Source: Anaeramoeba ignava BMAN (Eukaryota; Protista; Anaeramoebae). From it: 64,000 nucleotides of DNA. Positions 23,126-40,044 of this stretch are shown piece after piece (within the stretch, counting starts at the first letter, position 1; each line of letters opens with the position of its first letter). A program made the position numbers and the translations under genes. The stretch covers positions 558,001 through 622,000 of the forward strand of contig JAPDFW010000114.1 of the NCBI GenBank assembly GCA_028826165.1, read 5' to 3'. The notes under the pieces are model-generated. The model saw only the letters and a program-made list of their open reading frames with translations, ran no database searches and had not been told where the DNA came from.

Positions 23126-24250
23126 ATGGATAATTATGAAACTGCACCAATAGTTATTGATAATGGTTCAGGAATGATTAAAGTAGGATTTGCAGGAGAT
23201 GAGGCACCAAAAAAAGTTTTTCCTTCAATAATTGGAAGACCAAAACATTTAGGAGTTATGGTAGGAATGGGACAAAAAGATTCATATGTTGGAGATGAAG
23301 CTCAAGCCAAAAGTGTTATTTTAAATTTAAACTATCCAATAGAACATGGAATAATAACAAATTGGGATGATATGGAAAAGATTTGGAATTATACTTTTTA
23401 TAATGAATTAAGAGTTGCTCTTGAAGAACGCCCAATTTTAATAACTGAAGCTCCATTAAATCCAAAATCAAATAGGGAAAAAATAACTCAAATTATGTTT
23501 GAAACATTTAATGTTCCTGCATTTTATCTTGAAAATTCATCAATTTTACCACTTTATGAATCAAGAAGAACAACTGGAATTGTTATTGAAATTGGATATG
23601 GAGTTACTTCTGTTGTTCCAATTTATGAAGGATATGCTCCACCTCATGCAACACAAACAATGTTTGTAGCAGGAAGAGATTTAACTGATTATTTAATGAA
23701 ATTATTAAATGAAAAAGGATATTCATTTCAAACAACTGCTGAAAGAGAAATTGTTAGAGAGATTAAAGAAAAACTTGGATATGTTGCTTTGGATTTTGAT
23801 GAAGAAATGAAAAAAGAATTAAATTTAATTGAAAAAGATTATGAATTACCTGGTGAAGAATTAATTAAAATTGGAAATGAAAGATTTAGATGTTCAGAAC
23901 CTTTATTTGAGCCTTCTTTACTTGATTTAATCAATGATGGACTTCATGAAATGATTTATAATTCAATTATGAAATGTGATGAAGATATAAGAAAAGATCT
24001 TTTTGGAAATATTGTTTTATCAGGAGGTTCGACATTGTTTCCAGGAATTGATGAAAGAATTAAAAAAGAAATTACTCAATTAGCTCCTCCAAATACTGAA
24101 ATTGAAATTATTGCACCTCCTGAAAGAAAATATTCAACTTGGATTGGTGGATCTATTTTAACTTCTCTTTTTACTTTCCAAAAGATGTGGATTTCAAAAG
24201 AAGAATATGAAGAATCAGGACCTTCAATAGTTCACAGAAAATGTTTTTGA
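23126..24250 (+). CDS. act: Divergent actin, paralog 1 (374 aa; canonical D-loop; Q137S, H161S, D157Y)
   Basis: [62 protein letters not shown]. Confidence 0.95.
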
Positions 24251-25636: not shown

Positions 25637-25784
25637 AAAAAACAACAAAATCAAAAATTAATTTCATTTCTTTTATTGAAAATGATTATTTTTTTTTAAT
25701 TTTGTTTTTAAATTCTTTGTTTGTTTTGTTTTTGAAATAAATTTAAATTTGAAAATTTAATTTTCATTTTTTTTCTTTTCAAAA

Positions 25785-27596
25785 ATGAATGATTGTTTAT
25801 TTTTTGGTTTAAATGAAAACCCAAAACTTATCAAAAATGAACCAAATAAAATAAAAAAACCAATTCAATTTAAATTTGAAAATGAAAATGAAAATGAAAA
25901 AGAAAAACAAATTAAACAAATTTCATCAGGTTATTTTTCAACAATTTTCCTTTTTAAAAATGGAAAAGCAATAGAATACTTATTTAATTCAAATCAAAAT
26001 CCTCAAAAAATCCAAATTGAAAATATTCAAAAAGTAACTGTTGGTGCTAGAAATGAAGCTATTTTAACAATAGAAAGAAATGTATTTGCAAAAGGAAGAG
26101 ATATTAATTCAGATAATCCAAAAGAATTTATCAATATTTCATCATTAATTGAAGATACAAATGATAGAATAATTCAAGATATTGTTTCTGGAGATGGTTC
26201 AATTTACTTATTAACTTCAAATCAAAATGTTTATGGAATTGGTTCTAATAAATATGGTAAACTTGGTTTTGATTCTAAAACACTTCCAAAAACAGAAAAA
26301 CCAATTTTAATGATGAAAAATGTTTCTAAAATATTTTCAGGAAATTATTCAAATCATATTTTTCTTTTAAATTCAAATCAAGAATTATTTGTATGCGGTG
26401 ATAATCAATATGGTCAACTTGGATTAGGAGAATTAAGAAAAGAAAGGGAAATCCGAAAATTAACCAAAATCCAAAATATTCCAAAAGGAGAAATAATTGA
26501 TATTCAATGTGGATATTCTCATTCAATAATGTTGATTGAAAATGAAGATGAAAATCAAAATCCAAAAAGAAAACTTTATTCATGTGGAAATTATCTATAT
26601 AATGGACTTGACAAATATCAAAATACTTATGAATTTACTGAAATTAAATCATCTTTATTTGAAAATGATGATAATATTCTTGATTTTTCTGTTGATTATT
26701 CTCATACTTTGATTTTAACATCTAATTCAAAATTAATAGTATTTGGAGATAATAGATATGGTGAATTAGGAACTGGAAATACAGAAAATCAAATAATTCC
26801 AATTCAAATTGAACTTCCTAAATTAAGATTTAATGAAGAAATTTCCAATTATCATATTTCTTGTGGAGATAATAAATCATTTCTTTATTATTCTCCCCCT
26901 TCTTTTTCTAATCTTGAAGAAGATTTGATAAAACTATTTCAAAGAAAAGAATTTTGTGATATTTCATTTAAAACAGAAAATGGAGAAATAATTGAAGCTC
27001 ATAAATTAATATTAAAATATAGATTAAATCAAAATCAAAATGAAATTGAAAAACTTCAAGAAATTATTTCAAAAAAATCAATTAAAGAATCAAATCAAAT
27101 ATTTGAAATGATTTATTCAAACAGAATAATAAATCCAATATTATATTCTGAAATTAAAGAAATTATAAATTCAAATGAAAAAATTGAAGAAACAATGAAA
27201 AGAATTTATTTAAATGAAAATGAAAATGAAAATGAAAAAGATTTTATAATTGAAAGAAATGAAAAACAATATAAATTTCCTAAATTAATATTAATAATGA
27301 GAAGTGAATTATATCGAGGAATGTTTTTATCTGTAACTGAAGATAAATCTAATAAAGTTACAGATTATAGTGAATTAAGTAATAAATCATTTCAAATATT
27401 TGAATATTGGATTTATTCAAATCAAATTAAAGAAGGAATTCAAATTACACAAGAAATCATTGATGATTTAGAAACAGGAATTGATTATTTTCAATTAAAT
27501 CAAACAAATCCAAATTTATTTGATTTATTAATTAAAAATTTAATAATCAAAAAGAACAATCCAAATCAAAATATAATCCAAATTGGGATTTACTAG
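25785..27596 (+). CDS. RCC1-repeat (RLD) + BTB/POZ domain protein
   Basis: RCC1 repeats (GSNKYGKLG, CGDNQYGQLGLG, CGYSHS, FGDNRYGELGTG) followed by two BTB-like segments (FCDISF...IEAHKLIL; KDFII...FPKLILIMRSELYRGMF). Confidence 0.85.
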   Translation: MNDCLFFGLNENPKLIKNEPNKIKKPIQFKFENENENEKEKQIKQISSGYFSTIFLFKNGKAIEYLFNSNQNPQKIQIENIQKVTVGARNEAILTIERNVFAKGRDINSDNPKEFINISSLIEDTNDRIIQDIVSGDGSIYLLTSNQNVYGIGSNKYGKLGFDSKTLPKTEKPILMMKNVSKIFSGNYSNHIFLLNSNQELFVCGDNQYGQLGLGELRKEREIRKLTKIQNIPKGEIIDIQCGYSHSIMLIENEDENQNPKRKLYSCGNYLYNGLDKYQNTYEFTEIKSSLFENDDNILDFSVDYSHTLILTSNSKLIVFGDNRYGELGTGNTENQIIPIQIELPKLRFNEEISNYHISCGDNKSFLYYSPPSFSNLEEDLIKLFQRKEFCDISFKTENGEIIEAHKLILKYRLNQNQNEIEKLQEIISKKSIKESNQIFEMIYSNRIINPILYSEIKEIINSNEKIEETMKRIYLNENENENEKDFIIERNEKQYKFPKLILIMRSELYRGMFLSVTEDKSNKVTDYSELSNKSFQIFEYWIYSNQIKEGIQITQEIIDDLETGIDYFQLNQTNPNLFDLLIKNLIIKKNNPNQNIIQIGIY

Positions 27597-27611
27597 ATTC
27601 ACTAATTTTCC

Positions 27612-27955
27612 AAAATTAAAATCAAAATCAAAACTAAAATCAAAATCAAAATCAAAATCAAAATCAAAATCAAAATCAAAATCAAAATTAAAATCAAAAT
27701 TAAAATCAAAATTAAAATCAAAATCAAAATTAAAATCAAAATTAAAATTAAAATCAAAATTAAAATTAAAATTAAAATTAAAATTAAAATTAAAATTAAA
27801 ATTAAAATTAAAATTAAAATTAAAAATTAAAATTAAAATTAAAATTAAAATTAAAATTAAAATTAAAATTAAAATTAAAATTAAAATTAAAAATTAAAAT
27901 CAAAATTAAAAATTAAAATCAAAATTAAAATCAAATAATCAAAATTAAAATCAAA
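27612..27955. repeat. (AAAATT/AAAATC)n hexamer repeat, intergenic
   Basis: Direct inspection. Confidence 0.9.
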
Positions 27956-28122: not shown

Positions 28123-29244
28123 ATGGAAAAAGAAATTAAAACAATAGTTATTGATAATGGTTCAGGAATGATTAAAGCAGGATTTGCAGGAGATGATGCA
28201 CCAAGAACAGTTTTTCCTTCAATAATTGGAAGACCAAGAAATTCAGGAGATAAAATTGAAAAAGAAGAAAAAGAATATTATATTGGAGAAGAAGTTCAAT
28301 CCAAAAGAGATATTTTAAGTTTAAATTATCCAATAGAACATGGAATAATAAAAGATTGGGATGATATGGAAAAGATTTGGAATTATACTTTTGAAAATGA
28401 ATTAAAAGTTAAATCTGAAGAACATCCAATTTTAATAACTGAAGTTCCATTAAATCCAAAACAAAATAGGGAAAAAATAACTCAAATTATGTTTGAAACA
28501 TATAATGTTCCTGCATTTTATATTGCAAATTCAGCAGCTTTATCACTCTATATAACGGAAAGAACAACAGGAATTGTTATTGAAATTGGAGATGGAGTTA
28601 CTTCTGTTGCTTCAATTTATGAAGGATATGTTTTACCTCATACAATGAAAAGAGTGGGTTTTGCAGGAAGAGATTTAACTGAATATTTAATGAAATTATT
28701 AAAAGAAAAAGGATATTCATTTCAAACAAATACAGAAAGAGAAGTTGTTAGAGATATTAAAGAAAAACTTGGATATATTGCTTTGGATTTTGATGAAGAA
28801 ATGAAAAAAGAATCAAATTTAATTGAAAAAGAATATAAATTACCTAATGGAGAAGTTATTAAAATTGGAAATGAAAGATTTAAATGCTCAGAACCTTTAT
28901 TTGGCATTTCTTTACTTGATTTTTTATATGAAGGAGTTCATGAAATGATTTATAATTCAATTATGAAATGCGATAAAGATATAAGAAATGATCTTTATGG
29001 AAATATTGTTTTATCAGGTGGTTCAACAATGTTTCCAGGAATTGTTGAAAGAATTAAAAAAGAAATTACTTCATTAGCTCCTCCAAATACTGAAATTAAA
29101 ATTATTGCACCTCCTGAAAGAATATATTCAGCTTGGATTGGAGGATCTCTTTTACCATATGAGAACTATTCCGGAAATATGTGGATTTCAAAAGAGGAAT
29201 ACAAAGAATCAGGAGTTTCAATAGTTCACAGAAAATGCTTTTGA
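28123..29244 (+). CDS. act: Divergent actin, paralog 2 (373 aa; charged D-loop; Q137S, H161S)
   Basis: [46 protein letters not shown]. Confidence 0.95.
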
Positions 29245-30757: not shown

Positions 30758-31879
30758 ATGGAAAAAGAAATTAAAACAATAGTTATTGATAATGGTTCAA
30801 GACTGATTAAAGCAGGATTTGCAGGAGATGATGCACCAAGAACAGTTTTTCCTTCAATAATTGGAAGACCAAGAAATTCAGGAGATAAAATTGAAAAAGA
30901 AGAAAAAGAATTTTATATTGGAGAAGAAGCTCAATCAAAAAGAGATATTTTAAGTTTAAATTATCCAATAGAACATGGAATAGTAACAGATTGGGATGAT
31001 ATGGAAAAGATTTGGAATTATACTTTTGAAAATGAATTAAAAGTTAAACCTGAAGAACATCCAATTTTAATAACTGAAGTTCCATTAAATCCAAAACAAA
31101 ATAGGGAAAAAATAACTCAAATTATGTTTGAAACATATAATGTTCCAAAATTTTATATTGCAATATCACCATTTTTACCAATTTATACATCAGGAAAAGG
31201 TTCAGGAATTGTTATTGATATTGGAGATGGAGTTACTTCTGTTATTCCAATTTTTGAAAGATATGCTTTTCCTCATGCAATACAAAGAATGAATTTTGCA
31301 GGAAGAGATTTAACTGATTATTTAATGAAATTATTAAAAGAAAAAGGATATTCATTTGAAACAAATACAGAAAGAGAAGTTGTTAGAGAGATTAAAGAAA
31401 AACTTGGATATGTTGCTTTGGATTTTGATGAAGAAATGAAAAAAGAATCAACTTTAATTGAAAAAGAATATAAATTACCTGATGGAGAAGTTATTAAAAT
31501 TGGAAATGAAAGATTTATATGTTCAGAACTTTTATTTGACCTTTATTTACTTGATTTTTTATATTCAGGAGTTCACGAAATGATTTATAATTCAATTATG
31601 AAATGCGATAAAGATATAAGAAAAGATCTTTTTGGAAATATTGTTTTATCAGGTGGTTCAACAATGTTTCCAGGATTTGTTGAAAGAATTGAAAAAGAAA
31701 TTACTCAATTAGCTCCTCCAAATACTGAAATTGAAATTTTTGCACTTCCTGAAAGAAAATATTCAACTTGGATTGGTGGATCAATTTTAGCTTCTGTTTC
31801 AATTTCCAAAGATCAATGGATTTTAAAAGAAGAATATGAAAAATCAGGACCTACAATAGTTCACAGAAAATGTTTTTGA
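30758..31879 (+). CDS. act: Divergent actin, paralog 3 (373 aa; G15R, charged D-loop, Q137S, H161S)
   Basis: [46 protein letters not shown]. Confidence 0.95.
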
Positions 31880-32096: not shown

Positions 32097-33216
32097 ATGG
32101 AAAAAGAAATTAAAACAATAGTTATTGATAATGGTTCAAGACTGATTAAAGCAGGATTTGGAGGAGAAGATAAACCAAAAACAATTTTTCCTTCAATAAT
32201 TGGAAGACTAAGAAATTCAGGAGATAAAATTGAAAAAGAAGAAAAAGAATATTATATTGGAGAAGAAGTTCAATCCAAAAGTGGAATTTTAAATTTAAAT
32301 TACCCAATAGAACATGGAATAATAAAAGATTGGGATGATATGGAAAAGATTTGGAATTATACTTTTGAAAATGAATTAAGAGTTAAATCTGAAGAATATC
32401 CAATTTTAATAAGTGAAGTTCCATTAAATCCAAAACCAAATAAAGAAAAAATGGCACAAATTATGTTTGAAACATAATATTCCAAAATTTCATATTTCAA
32501 TATCAACAGTTTTACCAATTTATTCATCAGGAAAAGGTTCAGGATTTGTTATTGAAATTGGTGATGGAGTTACTTCTGTTGTTTCAATTTATGAAGGATA
32601 TGCTTTTCCTGATACAATAAAAAGAGTGGATTTTGCAGGAAGAGATTTAACTGAATATTTAATGAAATTATTAAATGAAAAAGGGAATTCATTTGAAACA
32701 AATATAGAAAGAGAAATTGTTAGAGATATTAAAGAAAAACTTGGATATGTTGCTTTAGATTTTGATGAAGAAATGGAAAAACATCAAAAATTAATTGAAA
32801 CAAAATATGAATTACCTGATGGTTAAATTATTCCAATTGGAAATGAAAGATTTAGATGTACAGAATCTTTATTCCAACCTTCTTTACTTGGATTAGAATA
32901 TTCAGGAGTTCATGAAATGATTTATAATTCAATTATGAAATGTGATGAAGATATAAGAAAAGAACTTTATGGAAATATTATTTTATCAGGTGGTTCAACA
33001 ATGTTTCCAGGATTTGTTGAAAGAATTGAAAAAGAAGTTACTCAATTAGCTCCTCCAAATACAAAAATTAACACCATTGCAGATTCTTTCCGACTAGATG
33101 CAGTTTGGATTGGTGGATCAATTTTAGCTTCCATTTCCACTTTCCAAAATAAATGGATTACAAAAGAAGAATATAAAGAATCAGGAGTTTCAATAGTTCA
33201 CAGAAAATGTTTTTAA
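32097..33216 (+). pseudogene. Actin pseudogene, paralog 4
   Basis: Split over three ORFs. A 2-nt deletion at about 32474 (ACA TAA T vs ACA TAT/TTT AAT in paralogs) and an in-frame TAA at 32824-32826 where paralogs have CAA (PDGQIIPIG). Confidence 0.85.
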
Positions 33217-33360
33217 AAAAAATTAATTTGGAACTTTTTCATTTTTTAATTCCACTTTTTTATATTTTTTTTAATTTAAAAAAAAAAAGAAATTTAAATT
33301 AAGAATTTTTTTTCATTTTCATTTTTTTTTATTTTCATTTTTTTATTTTTATTTTTTTAA

Positions 33361-34524
33361 ATGGAAAAAGAAAAAGAAAAAGAAAAAGAAAATTCAAATG
33401 AAATTGAAAAAGAAATTAAAACAATAGTTATTGATAATGGTTCAGGAATGATTAAAGCAGGATTTGCAGGAAAAGATAAACCAAAAACATTTTTTTCTTC
33501 AATAATTGGAAGACCAAGAAATTCAGGAGATAAAATTGAAAAAGAAGAAAAAGAATATTATATTGGAGAAGAAGCTCAATCCAAAAGAGATATTTTAAGT
33601 TTAAATTATCCAATAGAACGTGGAATAATAAAAGATTGGAATGATATGGAAAAGATTTGGAATTATACTTTTGAAAATGAATTAGAAGTTAAACCTGAAG
33701 AATGTCCAATTTTTATAAGTGAAGCTCCATTAAATCCAAAATCAAATAAAGAGAAAATGGCACAAATTATGTTTGAAACATTTAATGTACCAGCATTTTA
33801 TGTTGAAAATTCAGCAGTTTTATCAATTTATGCATCAGGAAAATATACAGGAGTTGTTGTTGATATTGGAGATGGAGTTACTTCTGTTGTTCCAATTTAT
33901 GAAGGATATGTTTTTCTTCCTGCAATACAAAGAATGGATTTTGCAGGAAGAGATTTAACTGAATATTTAATGAGGATATTAAAAGAAAAAGGGAATTCAT
34001 TTAAAACAAACAATGAAAGAGAAATTGTTAGAGAAATTAAAGAAGAATTTGGATATGTTGCGATGGATTTTAATGAAGAAATGAATACAAAATCAAATTT
34101 AATTGAAAAAGATTATGAATTACCTGATGGTGAATTAATTAAAATTGGAAATGAAAGATTTATATGTTCAGAAATTTTATTCCAACCTTCTTTACTGGAA
34201 ATCGGGCATGAACCTATTCATAAAATGATTTATAATTCAATTCTGGCATCTGACATTTTTTGCAGAAAAGATTTTTTTGGAAATATTATTTTATCAGGTG
34301 GTTCAACAATGTTTCCAGGAATTGCTGAAAGAATTGAAAAAGAAGTTACTCAATTAGCTCCTCCAAATACAAAAATTAACACCATTGCAGATTCTTTCCG
34401 ATTAGATGCAGTTTGGATTGGTGGATCAATTTTAGCTTCCATTTCCACTTTCCAAAATAAATGGATTACAAAAGAAGAATATGAAGAATCAGGAGTTTCA
34501 ATAGTTCACAGAAAATGCTTTTAA
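33361..34524 (+). CDS. act: Divergent actin, paralog 5 (387 aa; EK-rich N-extension, charged D-loop, H73R, Q137S, H161S)
   Basis: [38 protein letters not shown]. Confidence 0.95.
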
Positions 34525-34676
34525 AAAAAATTAATTTGGAACTTTTTCATTTTTTAATTCCACTTTTTTATATTTTTTTTAATTTAAAAAAAAAGAAAGA
34601 AATTTAAATTAAGAATTTTTTTTCATTTTCATTTTTTTTTATTTTCATTTTTTTATTTTTATTTTTTAATTTGAAA

Positions 34677-35900
34677 ATGGGAATAAATCATTCTAAACAA
34701 AAAGAAAATCAAAAACAAATAAATTTATTTAATGAAGAATCTTTGGAATTCATTGAAAAAGGAAATGAAATGGAAAATCAAATTAAAGCAATAGTTATTG
34801 ATAATGGTTCAGGAATGATTAAAGCAGCATTTTCAGGAAGTAATGCACCAAGAGCATATTTCCCTTCAATAATTGGAAGACCAAAATTTTCAAAATTTAT
34901 GATTGGAGCAGGAATAAGAGAATATTATATTGGAGATGAAGCTCAATCCAAAAGTGGAATTTTAAGTTTAAATTATCCAATAGAACATGGAATAGTAACG
35001 AATTGGGATGATATGGAAAAGATTTGGAATTATACTTTTTATGATGAATTAAGAGTTGCTCCTGAAGAATACCCAATTTTAATAAGTGAAGCTCCACTAA
35101 ATCCAAAATCAAATAGAGAAAAAATAACTCAAATTATGTTTGAAACATTTAATATTCCAAAATTTTATATTTCAGTATCAGCAGTTTTATCACTTTATAA
35201 TTCAGGAAGAACAACAGGAGTTGTTGTTGATATTGGAGATGGAGTTACTTCTGTTGTTCCAATTTATGAAGGATATGCTTTACCTCATGCAATACAAAGA
35301 CTTGATGTTGGAGGAAGAGATTTAACTAAATATTTAATTCATGAAAGAATACTAGAAAATTTACTTATAAAAGGAGTTTCACAATCTTCTCAAATGAGAA
35401 TTTATACAGATATTAAAGAAAAACTTGGATATGTTGCTTTGGATTTTGATGAAGAAATGGAAAAACATCAAAAATTGATTGAAACAGAATATGAATTACC
35501 TGATGGTCAAATTATTCCAATTGGAAATGAAAGATTTAGATGTACAGAATCTTTATTCCAACCATCTTTGCTTGGATTAGAATATTCAGGAGTTCATGAA
35601 ATGATTTATAATTCAATTATGAAATGTGATGAAGATATAAGAAAAGATCTTTATGGAAATATTATTTTATCAGGTGGTTCAACATTTTTTCCAGGAATTG
35701 CTGAAAGAATTGAAAAAGAAGTTACTCAATTAGCTCCTATTCATTTTAAAACAAAAATTATTTCACCTCTTGGAAGAAAAACTGCAGTTTGGATTGGAGG
35801 ATCTATTTTGACTTCTCTTTCTACTTCTCAAAAAATGTGGATTACAAAAGAAGAATATAAAGAATCAGGACCTTCAATAGTTCACAGAAAATGCTTTTAA
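34677..35900 (+). CDS. act: Divergent actin, paralog 6 (407 aa) with MGINHSK N-terminal extension (putative N-myristoylation)
   Basis: ATG at 34677 in aaaATG context (the ORF track starts at an upstream TTG); actin motifs through to VHRKCF. Confidence 0.93.
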
Positions 35901-36050
35901 AAAAAATTAATTTGGAACTTTTTCATTTTTTAATTCCACTTTTTTATATTTTTTTTAATTTAAAAAAAGAAAGAAATTTAAATTAAGAATTTTTTTTCAT
36001 TTTCATTTTTTTTTATTTTCATTTTTTTATTTTTATTTTTTAATTTGAAA

Positions 36051-37274
36051 ATGGGAATAAATCATTCTAAACAAAAAGAAAATCAAAAACAAATAAATTT
36101 ATTTAATGAAGAATCTTTGGAATTCATTGAAAAAGGAAATGGAATGGAAAATCAAATGGAAGCAATAGTTATTGATAATGGTTCAGGAATGATTAAAGCA
36201 GCATTTTCAGGAAGTAATGCACCAAGAGCATATTTCCCTTCAATAATTGGAAGACCAAAATTTTCAAAATTTATGATTGGAGCAGGAATAAGAGAATATT
36301 ATATTGGAGATGAAGCTCAATCCAAAAGTGGAATATTAAATTTAGAATATCCAATAGAACATGGAATAATAGCAAATTGGGATGATATGGAAAAGATTTG
36401 GCATCATATTTTTTATAATGAATTAAGAGTTGCTCCTGAAGAACATCCAATTTTAATAAGTGAAGCTCCACTAAATCCAAAATCAAATAGGGAAAAAATA
36501 ACTCAAATTATGTTTGAAACATTTAATATTCCAGCATTTTATATTTCAGTATCACCAGTTTTATCACTTTATTCATCAGGAAGAACAACAGGAGTTGTTG
36601 TTGATATTGGAGATGGAGTTACTTCTGTTGCTCCAATTTATGAAGGATATGCTTTACCTCATGCAATACAAAGACTTGATGTTGGAGGAAGAGATTTAAC
36701 TAAATATTTAATTCATGAAAGAATACTAGAAAATTTACTTATAAAAGGAATTTCACAATCTGCTAAAATGAGAATTTATACAGATATTAAAGAAAAACTT
36801 GGATATGTTGCTTTGGATTTTGATGAAGAAATGGAAAAACATCAAAAATTAATTGAAACAAAATATGAATTACCTGATGGTCAAATTATTCCAATTGGAA
36901 ATGAAAGATTTAGATGCACAGAACTTTTATTCCAACCATCTTTATTTGGATTAGAATATTCAGGAGTTCATGAAATGATTTATAATTCAATTATGAAATG
37001 TGATGAAGATATAAGAAAAGATCTTTATGGAAATATTGTTTTATCAGGTGGTTCAACATTTTTTCCAGGAATTGCTGAAAGAATTGAAAAAGAAGTTACT
37101 CAATTAGCTCCTATTCATTTTAAAACAAAAATTATTTCACCTCCTGAAAGAAAATATGCAGTTTGGATTGGAGGATCTATTTTGGCTTCTCTTCCTACTT
37201 TCCAAAAAATATGGATTACAAAAGAAGAATATAAAGAATCAGGACCTTCAATAGTTCACAGAAAATGTTTTTGA
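36051..37274 (+). CDS. act: Divergent actin, paralog 7 (407 aa) with MGINHSK N-terminal extension; tandem duplicate of paralog 6
   Basis: Near-identical to paralog 6, including the upstream spacer; repeat period 1374 bp. Confidence 0.93.
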
Positions 37275-37472
37275 AAAAATTAATTTGGAACTTTTTCATT
37301 TTTTAATTCCACTTTTTTATATTTTTTTTAATTTAAAAAAAAATGAAAGAAAAATTCAATTTTTATTTTTAGTAAATCAAAAAAGAAGATTAAAAAGTGG
37401 ACTAAGAATTAAATTTGGGTGAATCTTTAGGAGAAGATTAGAGAAAAAAGAACAAAATATAATATATTGTTT

Positions 37473-38585
37473 TTATTTATCAAAATCAATATCTTCCCAT
37501 CCTAAATCATCAATTTCATTGGCTTTCTCTATTTCAGGACTAGCTTCTTGTTGATATTTTTTTAAGCGATTCTTGAAATAAAGGGCAACATGGACAAGAC
37601 CCAACATAACTGGAACTTCGACAAGAGGACCAATTGTAGCTGATAATGATTCATTACTATCCAATCCAAATACTGAAATTGTTGTTGCAATGGCAAGTTC
37701 AAAATTATTACTTGCAGCAGTGAAACTGAGAGTAGTTGATTCCTGGTAACCGAAACCCAAGCGATAAGCAATTAAAAAGGAAATGAAAAACATGAGAAAA
37801 AAATAACATAGTAATGGGATGGCGATCCGTAAAATATCTAAAGGAATTTTGAGAACTTTGTCACCTTTGAGGCTGAACATGACAAAAATTGTGAATAACA
37901 AGAAAATAAATGTTAAAGGTGATATTTTGGGGATCACATGCTTCTTGTACCATTCTTCTCCTTTTGTTTTCACAAATGCTAAATTAGTGACTATCCCCAT
38001 CAAAAAAGGAATTCCGAGATAGATGAGAACACTTATTGCAATATCCTTCATTTTCACTTTCGAACTCACAGCACCCATTTTCATTAATTTTAGCATAGGA
38101 GAAGTAAAGAACCAAGCATAAACAGAATAGAACAAAATTTGGAAAATGCTATTAAAAGCAACTAACGCTGCTGCAATTTCCCGATCTCCAAGAGCAAGAT
38201 CATTCCACACAATCACCATTGCAATGCATCTTGCTAATCCAACAAATATCAAACCTGTCATATAATCTTTGTGATCAGGAAGCATGCCTACTACTAAAAA
38301 AAACATTAAAAATGGACCAATGAACCAATTTTGAACCAAAGAGAACACAAAGAGTCTTCTGATTTTCCATAATTTTTGATGGATTTTTTCATATTTCACT
38401 TTCGCAAGCGGTGGATACATCATCAAAATCAATCCGATGGCAATAGGAACATTAGTTGACCCAATTGTCAATGAGTCCCAGAATTTTGGTATTGCAGAAA
38501 CAAATCTTCCTAACAGAAGGCCTACTACAATTGTTAAAAATATCCACAACGTTAGAAATCTATCTATGAAAGACAAACCTCCCAT
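37473..38585 (-). CDS. acr3: Acr3-family arsenite/antimonite efflux transporter (intronless)
   Basis: LSFIDRFLTLWIF, PIAIGLILMMYPPLAKVKY, QNWFIGP.LMF, GLARCIAMVIVWN (conserved Cys), AFNSIFQ, FTAASNNFELAIA, GPLVEVPVM. Confidence 0.95.
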   Translation of the reverse strand: MGGLSFIDRFLTLWIFLTIVVGLLLGRFVSAIPKFWDSLTIGSTNVPIAIGLILMMYPPLAKVKYEKIHQKLWKIRRLFVFSLVQNWFIGPFLMFFLVVGMLPDHKDYMTGLIFVGLARCIAMVIVWNDLALGDREIAAALVAFNSIFQILFYSVYAWFFTSPMLKLMKMGAVSSKVKMKDIAISVLIYLGIPFLMGIVTNLAFVKTKGEEWYKKHVIPKISPLTFIFLLFTIFVMFSLKGDKVLKIPLDILRIAIPLLCYFFLMFFISFLIAYRLGFGYQESTTLSFTAASNNFELAIATTISVFGLDSNESLSATIGPLVEVPVMLGLVHVALYFKNRLKKYQQEASPEIEKANEIDDLGWEDIDFDK

Positions 38586-38874
38586 TTACTTTCAGAAATT
38601 GAAGTTTGAAAGAAAATGTAAAAGAAAAATCAACTAAAATGAAAATAAAAATGAAAATTCAAAATAAAAAAGCATTTTTCTTTTAAATTTGATCAAATTA
38701 CCATTTAATCCCCCTAATATTTTTTTACAAACTCTCAATAATTCCAATTCAAAAAATTTCTGTTTCTCTCTATCTTTTCTTTCTCAAATCGTAACTATTT
38801 TATTATCAACCAAATGATCCCCCAAAAAAATAAAAAAAAATAAAATAATAAAATAAAATAAAATAAAATAAAAA

Positions 38875-40044
38875 TTAATTTTTATCCATTAAAGAAATTC
38901 CTATTTCTTTGTATTTTTCTTTTAAAATCCATTGATCCTGGAAACTAGAAAGTGAAGCTAAAATTGATCCTCCAATCCAAACTGAATATTTTCTTTCAGG
39001 AGGTGAAATAATTTTTGTTTTTGTTTTTGTTTTTGTATTTGAAGGAACTAATTTAATAATTTCTTTTTCAATTCTTTCAACAATTCCTGGAAATAATGTT
39101 GAACCACCTGATAAAATAATATTTCCAAAAAGATATTTTCTTATATCTTCTTTGCATTTCATAATTGAATTATAAATCATTTTATGAACTCCTGAATATT
39201 CTAATCCAAGCAAAGAAGGCTGGAATAAAAGTTCTGTACATCTAAATCTTTCATTTCCAATTGGAATAATTTGACCATCAGGTAATTCATATTTTGTTTC
39301 AATTAATTTTTGATGTTTTTCCATTTCTTCATCAAAATCCAAAGCAACATATCCAAGTTTTTCTTTAATATCTCTAACAATTTCTCTTTCTATATTTGTT
39401 TCAAATGAATTCCCTTTTTCATTTAATAATTTCATTAAATATTCAGTTAAATCTCTTCCTGCCAAATCCATTCTTTTTATTGTATCAGGAAAAGCATATC
39501 CTTCATAAATTGAAACAACAGAAGTAACTCCATCACCAATATCAACAACAACTCCTGAACCTTTTCCTGATGAATAAAGTGATAAAACTGGTGAATTTTC
39601 AACATAAAATGCTGGTACATTAAATGTTTCAAACATAATTTGTGCCATTTTCTCTTTATTTGATTTTGGATTTAATGGAACTTCACTTATTAAAATTGGG
39701 TATTCTTCAGGTTTAACTCTTAATTCATTTTCAAAAGTATAATTCCAAATCTTTTCCATATCATCCCAATTCGTTACTATTCCATGTTCTATTGGATAAT
39801 TTAAATTTAATATTCCACTTTTGGATTGAGCTTCATCTCCAATATAATATTCTTTTTCTTCTTTTTCAATTTTATCTCCTGAATTTCTTGGTCTTCCAAT
39901 TATTGAAGAAAAAAATGTTCTTGGTGCATCATCTCCTGCAAATCCTGCTTTAATCATTCTTGAACCATTATCAATAACTAATGCTTTAATTTGATTTTCA
40001 ATTTCATTTGAATTATTTTCTTTTTTAGATAAATTTGATCCCAT
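38875..40044 (-). CDS. act: Divergent actin, paralog 8 (389 aa, inverted) with MGSNLSK N-extension, G15R and an aberrant C-terminus
   Basis: [36 protein letters not shown]; ends ISLMDKN instead of VHRKCF. Confidence 0.92.

Follow-up and report, generated by a model that had tools for sequence, protein, structure and literature searches.

Full-length actins of Anaeramoeba ignava with an inherited leader that is a candidate signal for N-myristoylation

The window analysed here, a 64,000-nucleotide stretch of the genome of the protist Anaeramoeba ignava BMAN (positions 558001-622000 of contig C104 in a 42.8-Mb, 147-contig assembly), carries a tandem array of eight actin paralogs (p1-p8), of which p6, p7 and p8 open with an extended leader that begins Met-Gly (MG). 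A fourth actin of this kind lies on contig C122. On balance, the sequences favor the reading that a small clade of fast-evolving A. ignava actins inherited a module of the form MG-x-x-x-[S/T]-K-(Q)-K-[D/E]-N behind which come a linker of variable sequence and the whole actin fold, and that at least some of the four are myristoylated in vivo. If so, a lipid-anchor signal known from other proteins would here sit on a carrier where it was not expected.

Behind each leader in the array stands a complete Pfam actin domain, which begins at residue 35 in p6 and p7 and at residue 18 in p8, with E-values near 1e-130 (p6: residues 35-407, E 1.8e-130). Across the MG actins the match to the actin family (PF00022) spans profile positions 3-410 at E-values from 1e-125 to 1e-135, and p6 aligns end to end with Dictyostelium actin (PDB 1nlv, residues 4-375). 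An earlier note on this DNA had read the leader sequences directly, had placed them ahead of full-length actins and had put the extension of p6 and p7 at roughly 30 residues; all of this was confirmed in the open reading frames (ORFs) at 34677, 36051 and 40044. In p6 and p7, whose first 30 residues are the same, 31 residues precede an internal methionine (Met32) that aligns exactly with Met1 of p2 and p3.

The same note took the leaders of p6/p7 and of p8 to be two different sequences, and on this point we came to a different view. Both use the same codons for M1, G2 (GGA), N4 (AAT), S6 (TCT) and K7 (AAA), followed by K-E-N, and both carry GAA AAT CAA ATT AAA GCA ahead of the first β-strand. 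Because the codons are identical, the two leaders go back to one ancestral leader, and on this evidence they are homologous, not independent inventions. In p6 and p7 the leader is longer by an acidic insert of about 17 codons. As the earlier note had stated, and as the codons bear out, p5 has the NSNEIE linker in common with p8 and a start that lacks Gly2; the leaders of p5 and p8 are equal in length, and Gly2 is gone from p5 because its codons 2-10 are a (GAA AAA) repeat, which makes p5 a natural G2-less relative. A recurrent acidic-aromatic motif (NFEDF, LNFEDL, NFEEI) was seen in the N-terminal extensions of many divergent paralogs elsewhere in the genome (L016, L033, L037, L038, L042, L057, L061, L023/L029 and others), and the insert in the p6/p7 leader (window 34722-34751) resembles it.

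The ancestral actin start codon reads ATT in both p5 and p8. After the MG codon, the next in-frame ATG of p8 is that of Met30, already within the fold, so that p8 would have to start at the MG codon. For p6 and p7, initiation could occur at either ATG. The p6 start lies in the context AAAATG, the same as in most of the actin paralogs, and its leader has a GC content of 0.20, between those of the upstream sequence (0.07) and the body of the gene (0.28). An open stretch of 31 codons has a chance of about 0.04 in this intergenic composition.

The earlier note had suggested a survey of the genome for further MG-leader actins, and this yielded one more, an anciently diverged gene in which the module is kept (G2, T6). 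A pattern search for ATG-GGN with a Ser/Thr-type codon at position 6 and a DNG motif within 135 nucleotides matched p6, p7, p8 and this single gene on contig C122, unlinked to the array in the window. Its product starts MGVSATKQKDN and continues with a linker rich in K, R, T and N and then a complete actin domain; there is no alternative ATG ahead of the fold, and the public annotation also starts at the MG codon. Relative to p6, the body of the C122 protein shows 54% amino acid identity, a maximum-likelihood (ML) synonymous divergence (dS) of 2.3, which is saturated, and a ratio of nonsynonymous to synonymous rates (omega) of 0.13, a value that points to a gene that is under purifying selection. 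Over this distance M1, G2, K7, Q8, K9 and N11 of the module are unchanged, with conservative replacements at I/V3, S/T6 and E/D10; the roughly 20 leader residues that follow the module cannot be aligned. Identity at the DNA level is about 73% for the module (by our count) and about 70-72% for the body, and because the two match, a recent transfer of the module is unlikely. The C122 leader has a body-like GC content of 0.32, compared with 0.14 upstream.

The module is rare in the genome and was found only at the 5' ends of actin genes. The DNA pattern for MGxxx[ST]KxK[DE]N gave three matches in 42.8 Mb (p6, p7 and the C122 gene), all of them actin 5' ends, and the reversed-pattern control gave none. 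At least 103 actin matches came out of a six-frame search of the genome, and from the genome we recovered a survey set of 108 actin-like ORFs. Just four of the 108 (p6, p7, p8 and the C122 gene) pass a PROSITE-type myristoylation rule; three other actins, on contig C62, start MGDD and fail it. Those starts belong to a separate array of near-conventional actins (L011, L014; C62:504630-510302) that begin MGDD or MGDDDD and are acidic after Gly2. Of the 69 non-actin ORFs available for comparison, one has an MG start.

With the leaders trimmed before tree building, the C122 gene, the array of the window and five other paralogs formed one clade (ultrafast bootstrap 94, SH-aLRT 98) in which the branching is unresolved; a grouping of the four MG actins was not rejected (approximately unbiased test, p 0.20). 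Trees within the array call for caution, since p8 is a recombinant mosaic: its first two thirds resemble p4/p5 and its last third p6/p7. The sequences are most simply explained by a single gain of the module before the split of the C122 gene from the array, with later losses in p5 through the repeat replacement and in p1-p4 through use of a downstream ATG.

Myristoylation rules of the PROSITE type require Met1-Gly2, a third residue that is not charged, aromatic or proline, one of S, T, A, G, C or N at position 6 and no proline at position 7, and N-myristoyltransferase (NMT) itself prefers Gly2, an uncharged residue 3, free choice at positions 4 and 5, Ser or Thr at 6 and Lys at 7. The proposal that the leaders fit NMT substrates held up: p6, p7 and p8 pass the rule, residue 3 is uncharged in every MG leader (I, S or V), and positions 6 and 7 read S-K in p6-p8 and T-K in the C122 gene. 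In structures of human NMT1, Lys7 forms the only specific salt bridges at that position, to aspartates of the enzyme (PMC7048800). The A. ignava genome holds two complete NMT genes, each with PF01233 and PF02799, a count that agrees with the published Anaeramoeba gene-family table, in which two NMT genes are listed for one strain (gene-ID prefix M0811; Supplementary Data of PMC11550330).

Beyond the module itself, the leaders differ in charge. Over 33 residues the net charge of the C122 leader is about +7, with eight K/R against one D/E; that of p6 and p7 is +2 over the first 15 residues and acidic overall, and that of p8 is 0. A basic patch is present in the C122 leader only, and no MG leader has a cysteine that could take palmitate. 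The closest comparison is with the SH4 tag of the kinase c-Src (MGSNKSKPK; MGSNKSKPKDASQR; PMC2199243), to which p8 matches at six of the first seven residues, with MGSN-SK in common. The C122 leader likewise joins the MG module to basic charge, as in the "myristate plus basic" tags of the Src/MARCKS type, and is the cleanest candidate for an actin with myristate and a basic patch. In contrast to c-Src, the predicted tag is here carried by actin, and in p6-p8 it comes without a basic cluster.

The nearest precedent among actins is tActin, a 15-kDa C-terminal actin fragment to which, according to its citation in PMC3414384, myristate is added once caspase has released it (Utsumi et al. 2003). 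As described there, tActin also derives from actin, bears an N-terminal myristate and is sent to a membrane, that of mitochondria; it is, however, modified post-translationally at an internal glycine exposed by proteolysis and is a fragment unable to polymerise, whereas the encoded leader of the MG actins would lipidate a whole actin co-translationally. In full-text literature searches, no myristoylated full-length actin or actin-like protein was found, only the tActin fragment.

The bodies of the MG actins have the same full-length fold as conventional actin (Dictyostelium 1nlv; A. ignava P0116, which is 100% identical to the NCBI entry 'actin [Anaeramoeba ignava]') at 65-69% identity, or 54-62% for the C122 gene. 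As in conventional actin, p6, p7 and the C122 protein keep H73, most of the C-terminus and the phosphate loops, in which D11, S14-G15, D154 and G156-D157-G158 are intact apart from T14 in C122; those of p8 are not intact. Where conventional actin has a short, acidic, acetylated N-terminus, the MG actins have a leader of 17-34 residues, and the conventional DNase-binding loop (D-loop) is rewritten in them, so that they show neither of these two conventional features. In p6 and p7 a segment of subdomain 4 between GRDLTKYL and DIKEKL (35313-35408 and 36687-36782) has given way to unrelated sequence that exceeds its counterpart in the other paralogs by three residues. A compensated frameshift was considered as the origin of this segment and of the p8 tail and was rejected, as no other frame restores actin. 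AlphaFold2 modelling of p6 from a 25-sequence alignment gave a mean pLDDT of 35, and the model is not usable.

The earlier note had combined the leaders with changes at two ATP-hydrolysis residues, Q137S/H161S, but these changes are not special to the MG-leader actins. Ser stands at both positions in p1-p3, in p5-p8 and in the C122 protein, and only 10 of the 91 full-length actins of the genome keep Q137 and H161, so that their loss is a genome-wide theme and is not tied to the leader. The remaining full-length ORFs carry a variety of combinations (SS, QQ, SH, QY, SF and others), and many also have altered phosphate loops. Arg replaces Gly15 (DNGSR) in p3, p4 and p8 (30758-31879, 32097-32477 and 38875-40044), a change that, judged from the position, should disturb nucleotide binding. 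The middle part of p4 is 96-99% identical to p8, which indicates recent gene conversion between these two members of an inverted pair.

Several observations weigh against lipidated MG actins, and we give them here together with the two alternatives that draw on them. One alternative, which we regard as rather unlikely, is that translation does not begin at the MG codon or that the genes themselves do not work: p6 and p7 would then be translated from Met32 with the leader as a 5' untranslated region (UTR), p8 would be decaying, and the module would be a relic of gene conversion among neighbours. The ancestral ATG does survive in p6 and p7, where the leader could be 5' UTR, and about one in ten of the other paralogs have in-frame upstream ATG extensions made of UTR-like F, K, N and I residues; the p6 leader is unlike these in composition and intermediate in GC content. 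Gene conversion and mosaicism are found throughout the array. Between 69 nucleotides 5' of the ATG and codon 30, p6 and p7 show no nucleotide difference; their repeat units are identical in the first 160 nucleotides, compared with a difference of 3.7% elsewhere, and this fits gene conversion as well as selection. The array evolves fast, with ML omega values of 0.3-0.55 as opposed to 0.00-0.07 for conventional actins (F3x4 codon frequencies, calibrated on conventional actins), and this, together with the pseudogene p4 and with G15R in the first phosphate loop of p8 and the loss of its C-terminal HRKCF, suggests that some array copies may be decaying. Against this alternative, the unlinked C122 gene keeps the module at an omega of 0.13 and has no other ATG to start from, and p8, despite the loss of the ancestral ATG, is still an intact ORF of 389 codons in a genome whose intergenic frames stop every 10 codons or so. 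The ML omega is also below 1 for all pairs; Nei-Gojobori dN/dS values above 1 were rejected as an artefact of the low GC content at third codon positions (7-11%).

The other alternative is that the leaders are translated but that the module has another role, as a binding motif, a degron or, in the basic C122 leader, a nuclear import signal, and that its resemblance to NMT substrates is incidental. The C122 leader, rich in K, R, T, N and P, could indeed pass as a bipartite basic signal, and conservation reaches past what NMT needs, to Q8, K9, D/E10 and N11. No basic patch or second lipid site of the kind typical of stably membrane-bound myristoylated proteins is present in the leaders of p6-p8, and because of this the predicted membrane affinity of their monomers is low. 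The sites kept over a saturated divergence nevertheless include those that NMT reads (G2, S/T6 and K7), while positions 4 and 5 vary freely, and an exposed Gly2 with S/T6 and K7 would very likely be acylated wherever an NMT is present. We consider this alternative improbable.

Searches beyond the genome add one further point on the negative side, in that word searches with the p6 and C122 leaders returned only the A. ignava genome's own proteins. Metagenomes scanned with the N-terminal 60 residues of the C122 protein gave 61 loci, and the best 18, when translated, were conventional actins, nearly all on high-GC contigs; apparent leader matches in these loci were discarded as translated 5' UTR repeats. 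[quoted passage not shown] A 381-residue actin from a JGI metagenome (P0107) has MGTQLT at its head, ahead of a normal MEDSIAALVVDNGSG start; it represents either an artefact of gene calling or a further MG-extended actin.

Coordinates of the array, its leaders and the C122 gene are collected in Table 1. The window is about 80% A+T, and the A. ignava genome has been published at 80.65% (PMC11550330); one sequencing run, of a kind not known, contained 37% of the words from the stretch of the window. The spacers upstream of p5, p6 and p7 (33217-33360, 34608-34676 and 35901-36050), of about 150 nucleotides, are nearly identical, and the promoter, UTR and terminator of p5-p7 must all be confined to them. 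The SBF/ACR3-type transporter gene sits where the array switches orientation, and p1 is separated from p2 by two unrelated genes, one for a small GTPase and one for an RCC1-BTB protein. The RCC1-BTB gene, which adjoins p2 (25761-27689), has two tandem copies beside the C122 MG-actin (L090:2-3625) at 87-88% nucleotide identity; the RCC1-BTB/actin neighbourhood thus recurs, although the actins (72% nucleotide identity) are duplicates of much greater age.

Table 1. Actin paralogs, leader elements and the intervening transporter gene (window positions unless a contig is named)
Feature	Position	Strand	Remark
Paralog 1 (p1)	23126-24250	+	N-terminus short, of conventional length
Paralog 2 (p2)	28123-29244	+	N-terminus short, of conventional length
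Paralog 3 (p3)	30758-31879	+	N-terminus short, of conventional length
Paralog 4 (p4)	32097-33216	+	Actin pseudogene in three ORF pieces
Paralog 5 (p5)	33361-34524	+	Leader length as in p8; (GAA AAA) repeat at codons 2-10
Paralog 6 (p6)	34677-35900 (ATG to stop)	+	407-aa actin with 31-residue leader
p6 codons 1-11, MG-x-x-x-S-K-Q-K-E-N module	34677-34709	+	Putative NMT recognition signal
p6 codons 12-31, variable acidic linker	34710-34769	+	Absent from p8 (alignment)
p6 internal ATG (Met32)	34770-34772	+	Ancestral actin start codon; possible alternative initiation site
Paralog 7 (p7)	36051-37274	+	407-aa actin, 93% identical to p6
p7 internal Met32	36144-36146	+	
SBF/ACR3-type transporter gene (PF01758)	37473-38585	-	Between p7 and p8
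Paralog 8 (p8)	40044-38875	-	389-aa actin with 17-residue leader
p8 codons 1-10, leader module	40015-40044	-	Homologous to the p6/p7 module
C122 MG-actin (P0121)	C122:164263-165468 = L027:1501-2706	-	402 aa; NCBI 'actin-7-related [Anaeramoeba ignava]'

If the MG actins are indeed lipidated, the most likely route is the following. Translation would start at the MG codon, methionine aminopeptidase would expose Gly2, and one of the two NMTs would add myristate co-translationally, which would place the lipid on a flexible tether of 17-34 residues that leaves subdomain 1 on the outward face of the filament. The actin N-terminus lies on the outer face of subdomain 1, and for this reason a lipidated tether is geometrically compatible with filaments. 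In the C122 protein a basic tether plus myristate would be the classical arrangement and could bind acidic membranes even as a monomer. For p6-p8 the tether is neutral to acidic and a single myristate would bind weakly, so that stable attachment would need the avidity of oligomerisation or polymerisation; in p6 and p7, initiation at Met32 could in addition yield a short, unlipidated form.

A larger picture can be drawn from these elements, and we regard it as doubtful: an adaptor-free actin lattice on a membrane, in which the module would tether hydrolysis-impaired subunits, attachment would come from the avidity of the polymer, and p6 and p7 would supply long anchored and short free forms, possibly at plasma membrane pockets or at the symbiosome. 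The static coat, nucleation seed or symbiont-containing compartment envisaged in the earlier note found no support in this analysis, and actin is not discussed in the Anaeramoeba symbiosome paper.

Actin is not known to reach membranes other than via adaptor proteins or via lipids that bind its regulators, and the MG-leader actins, as read from their sequences, may represent the first case of actins made to attach to a membrane directly. If this is true, a full-length actin with an inherited and conserved NMT signal would represent a new form of coupling between the cytoskeleton and the membrane, and the MG actins would offer a concrete handle on the purpose of the expansion to more than 100 actin genes in Anaeramoeba.

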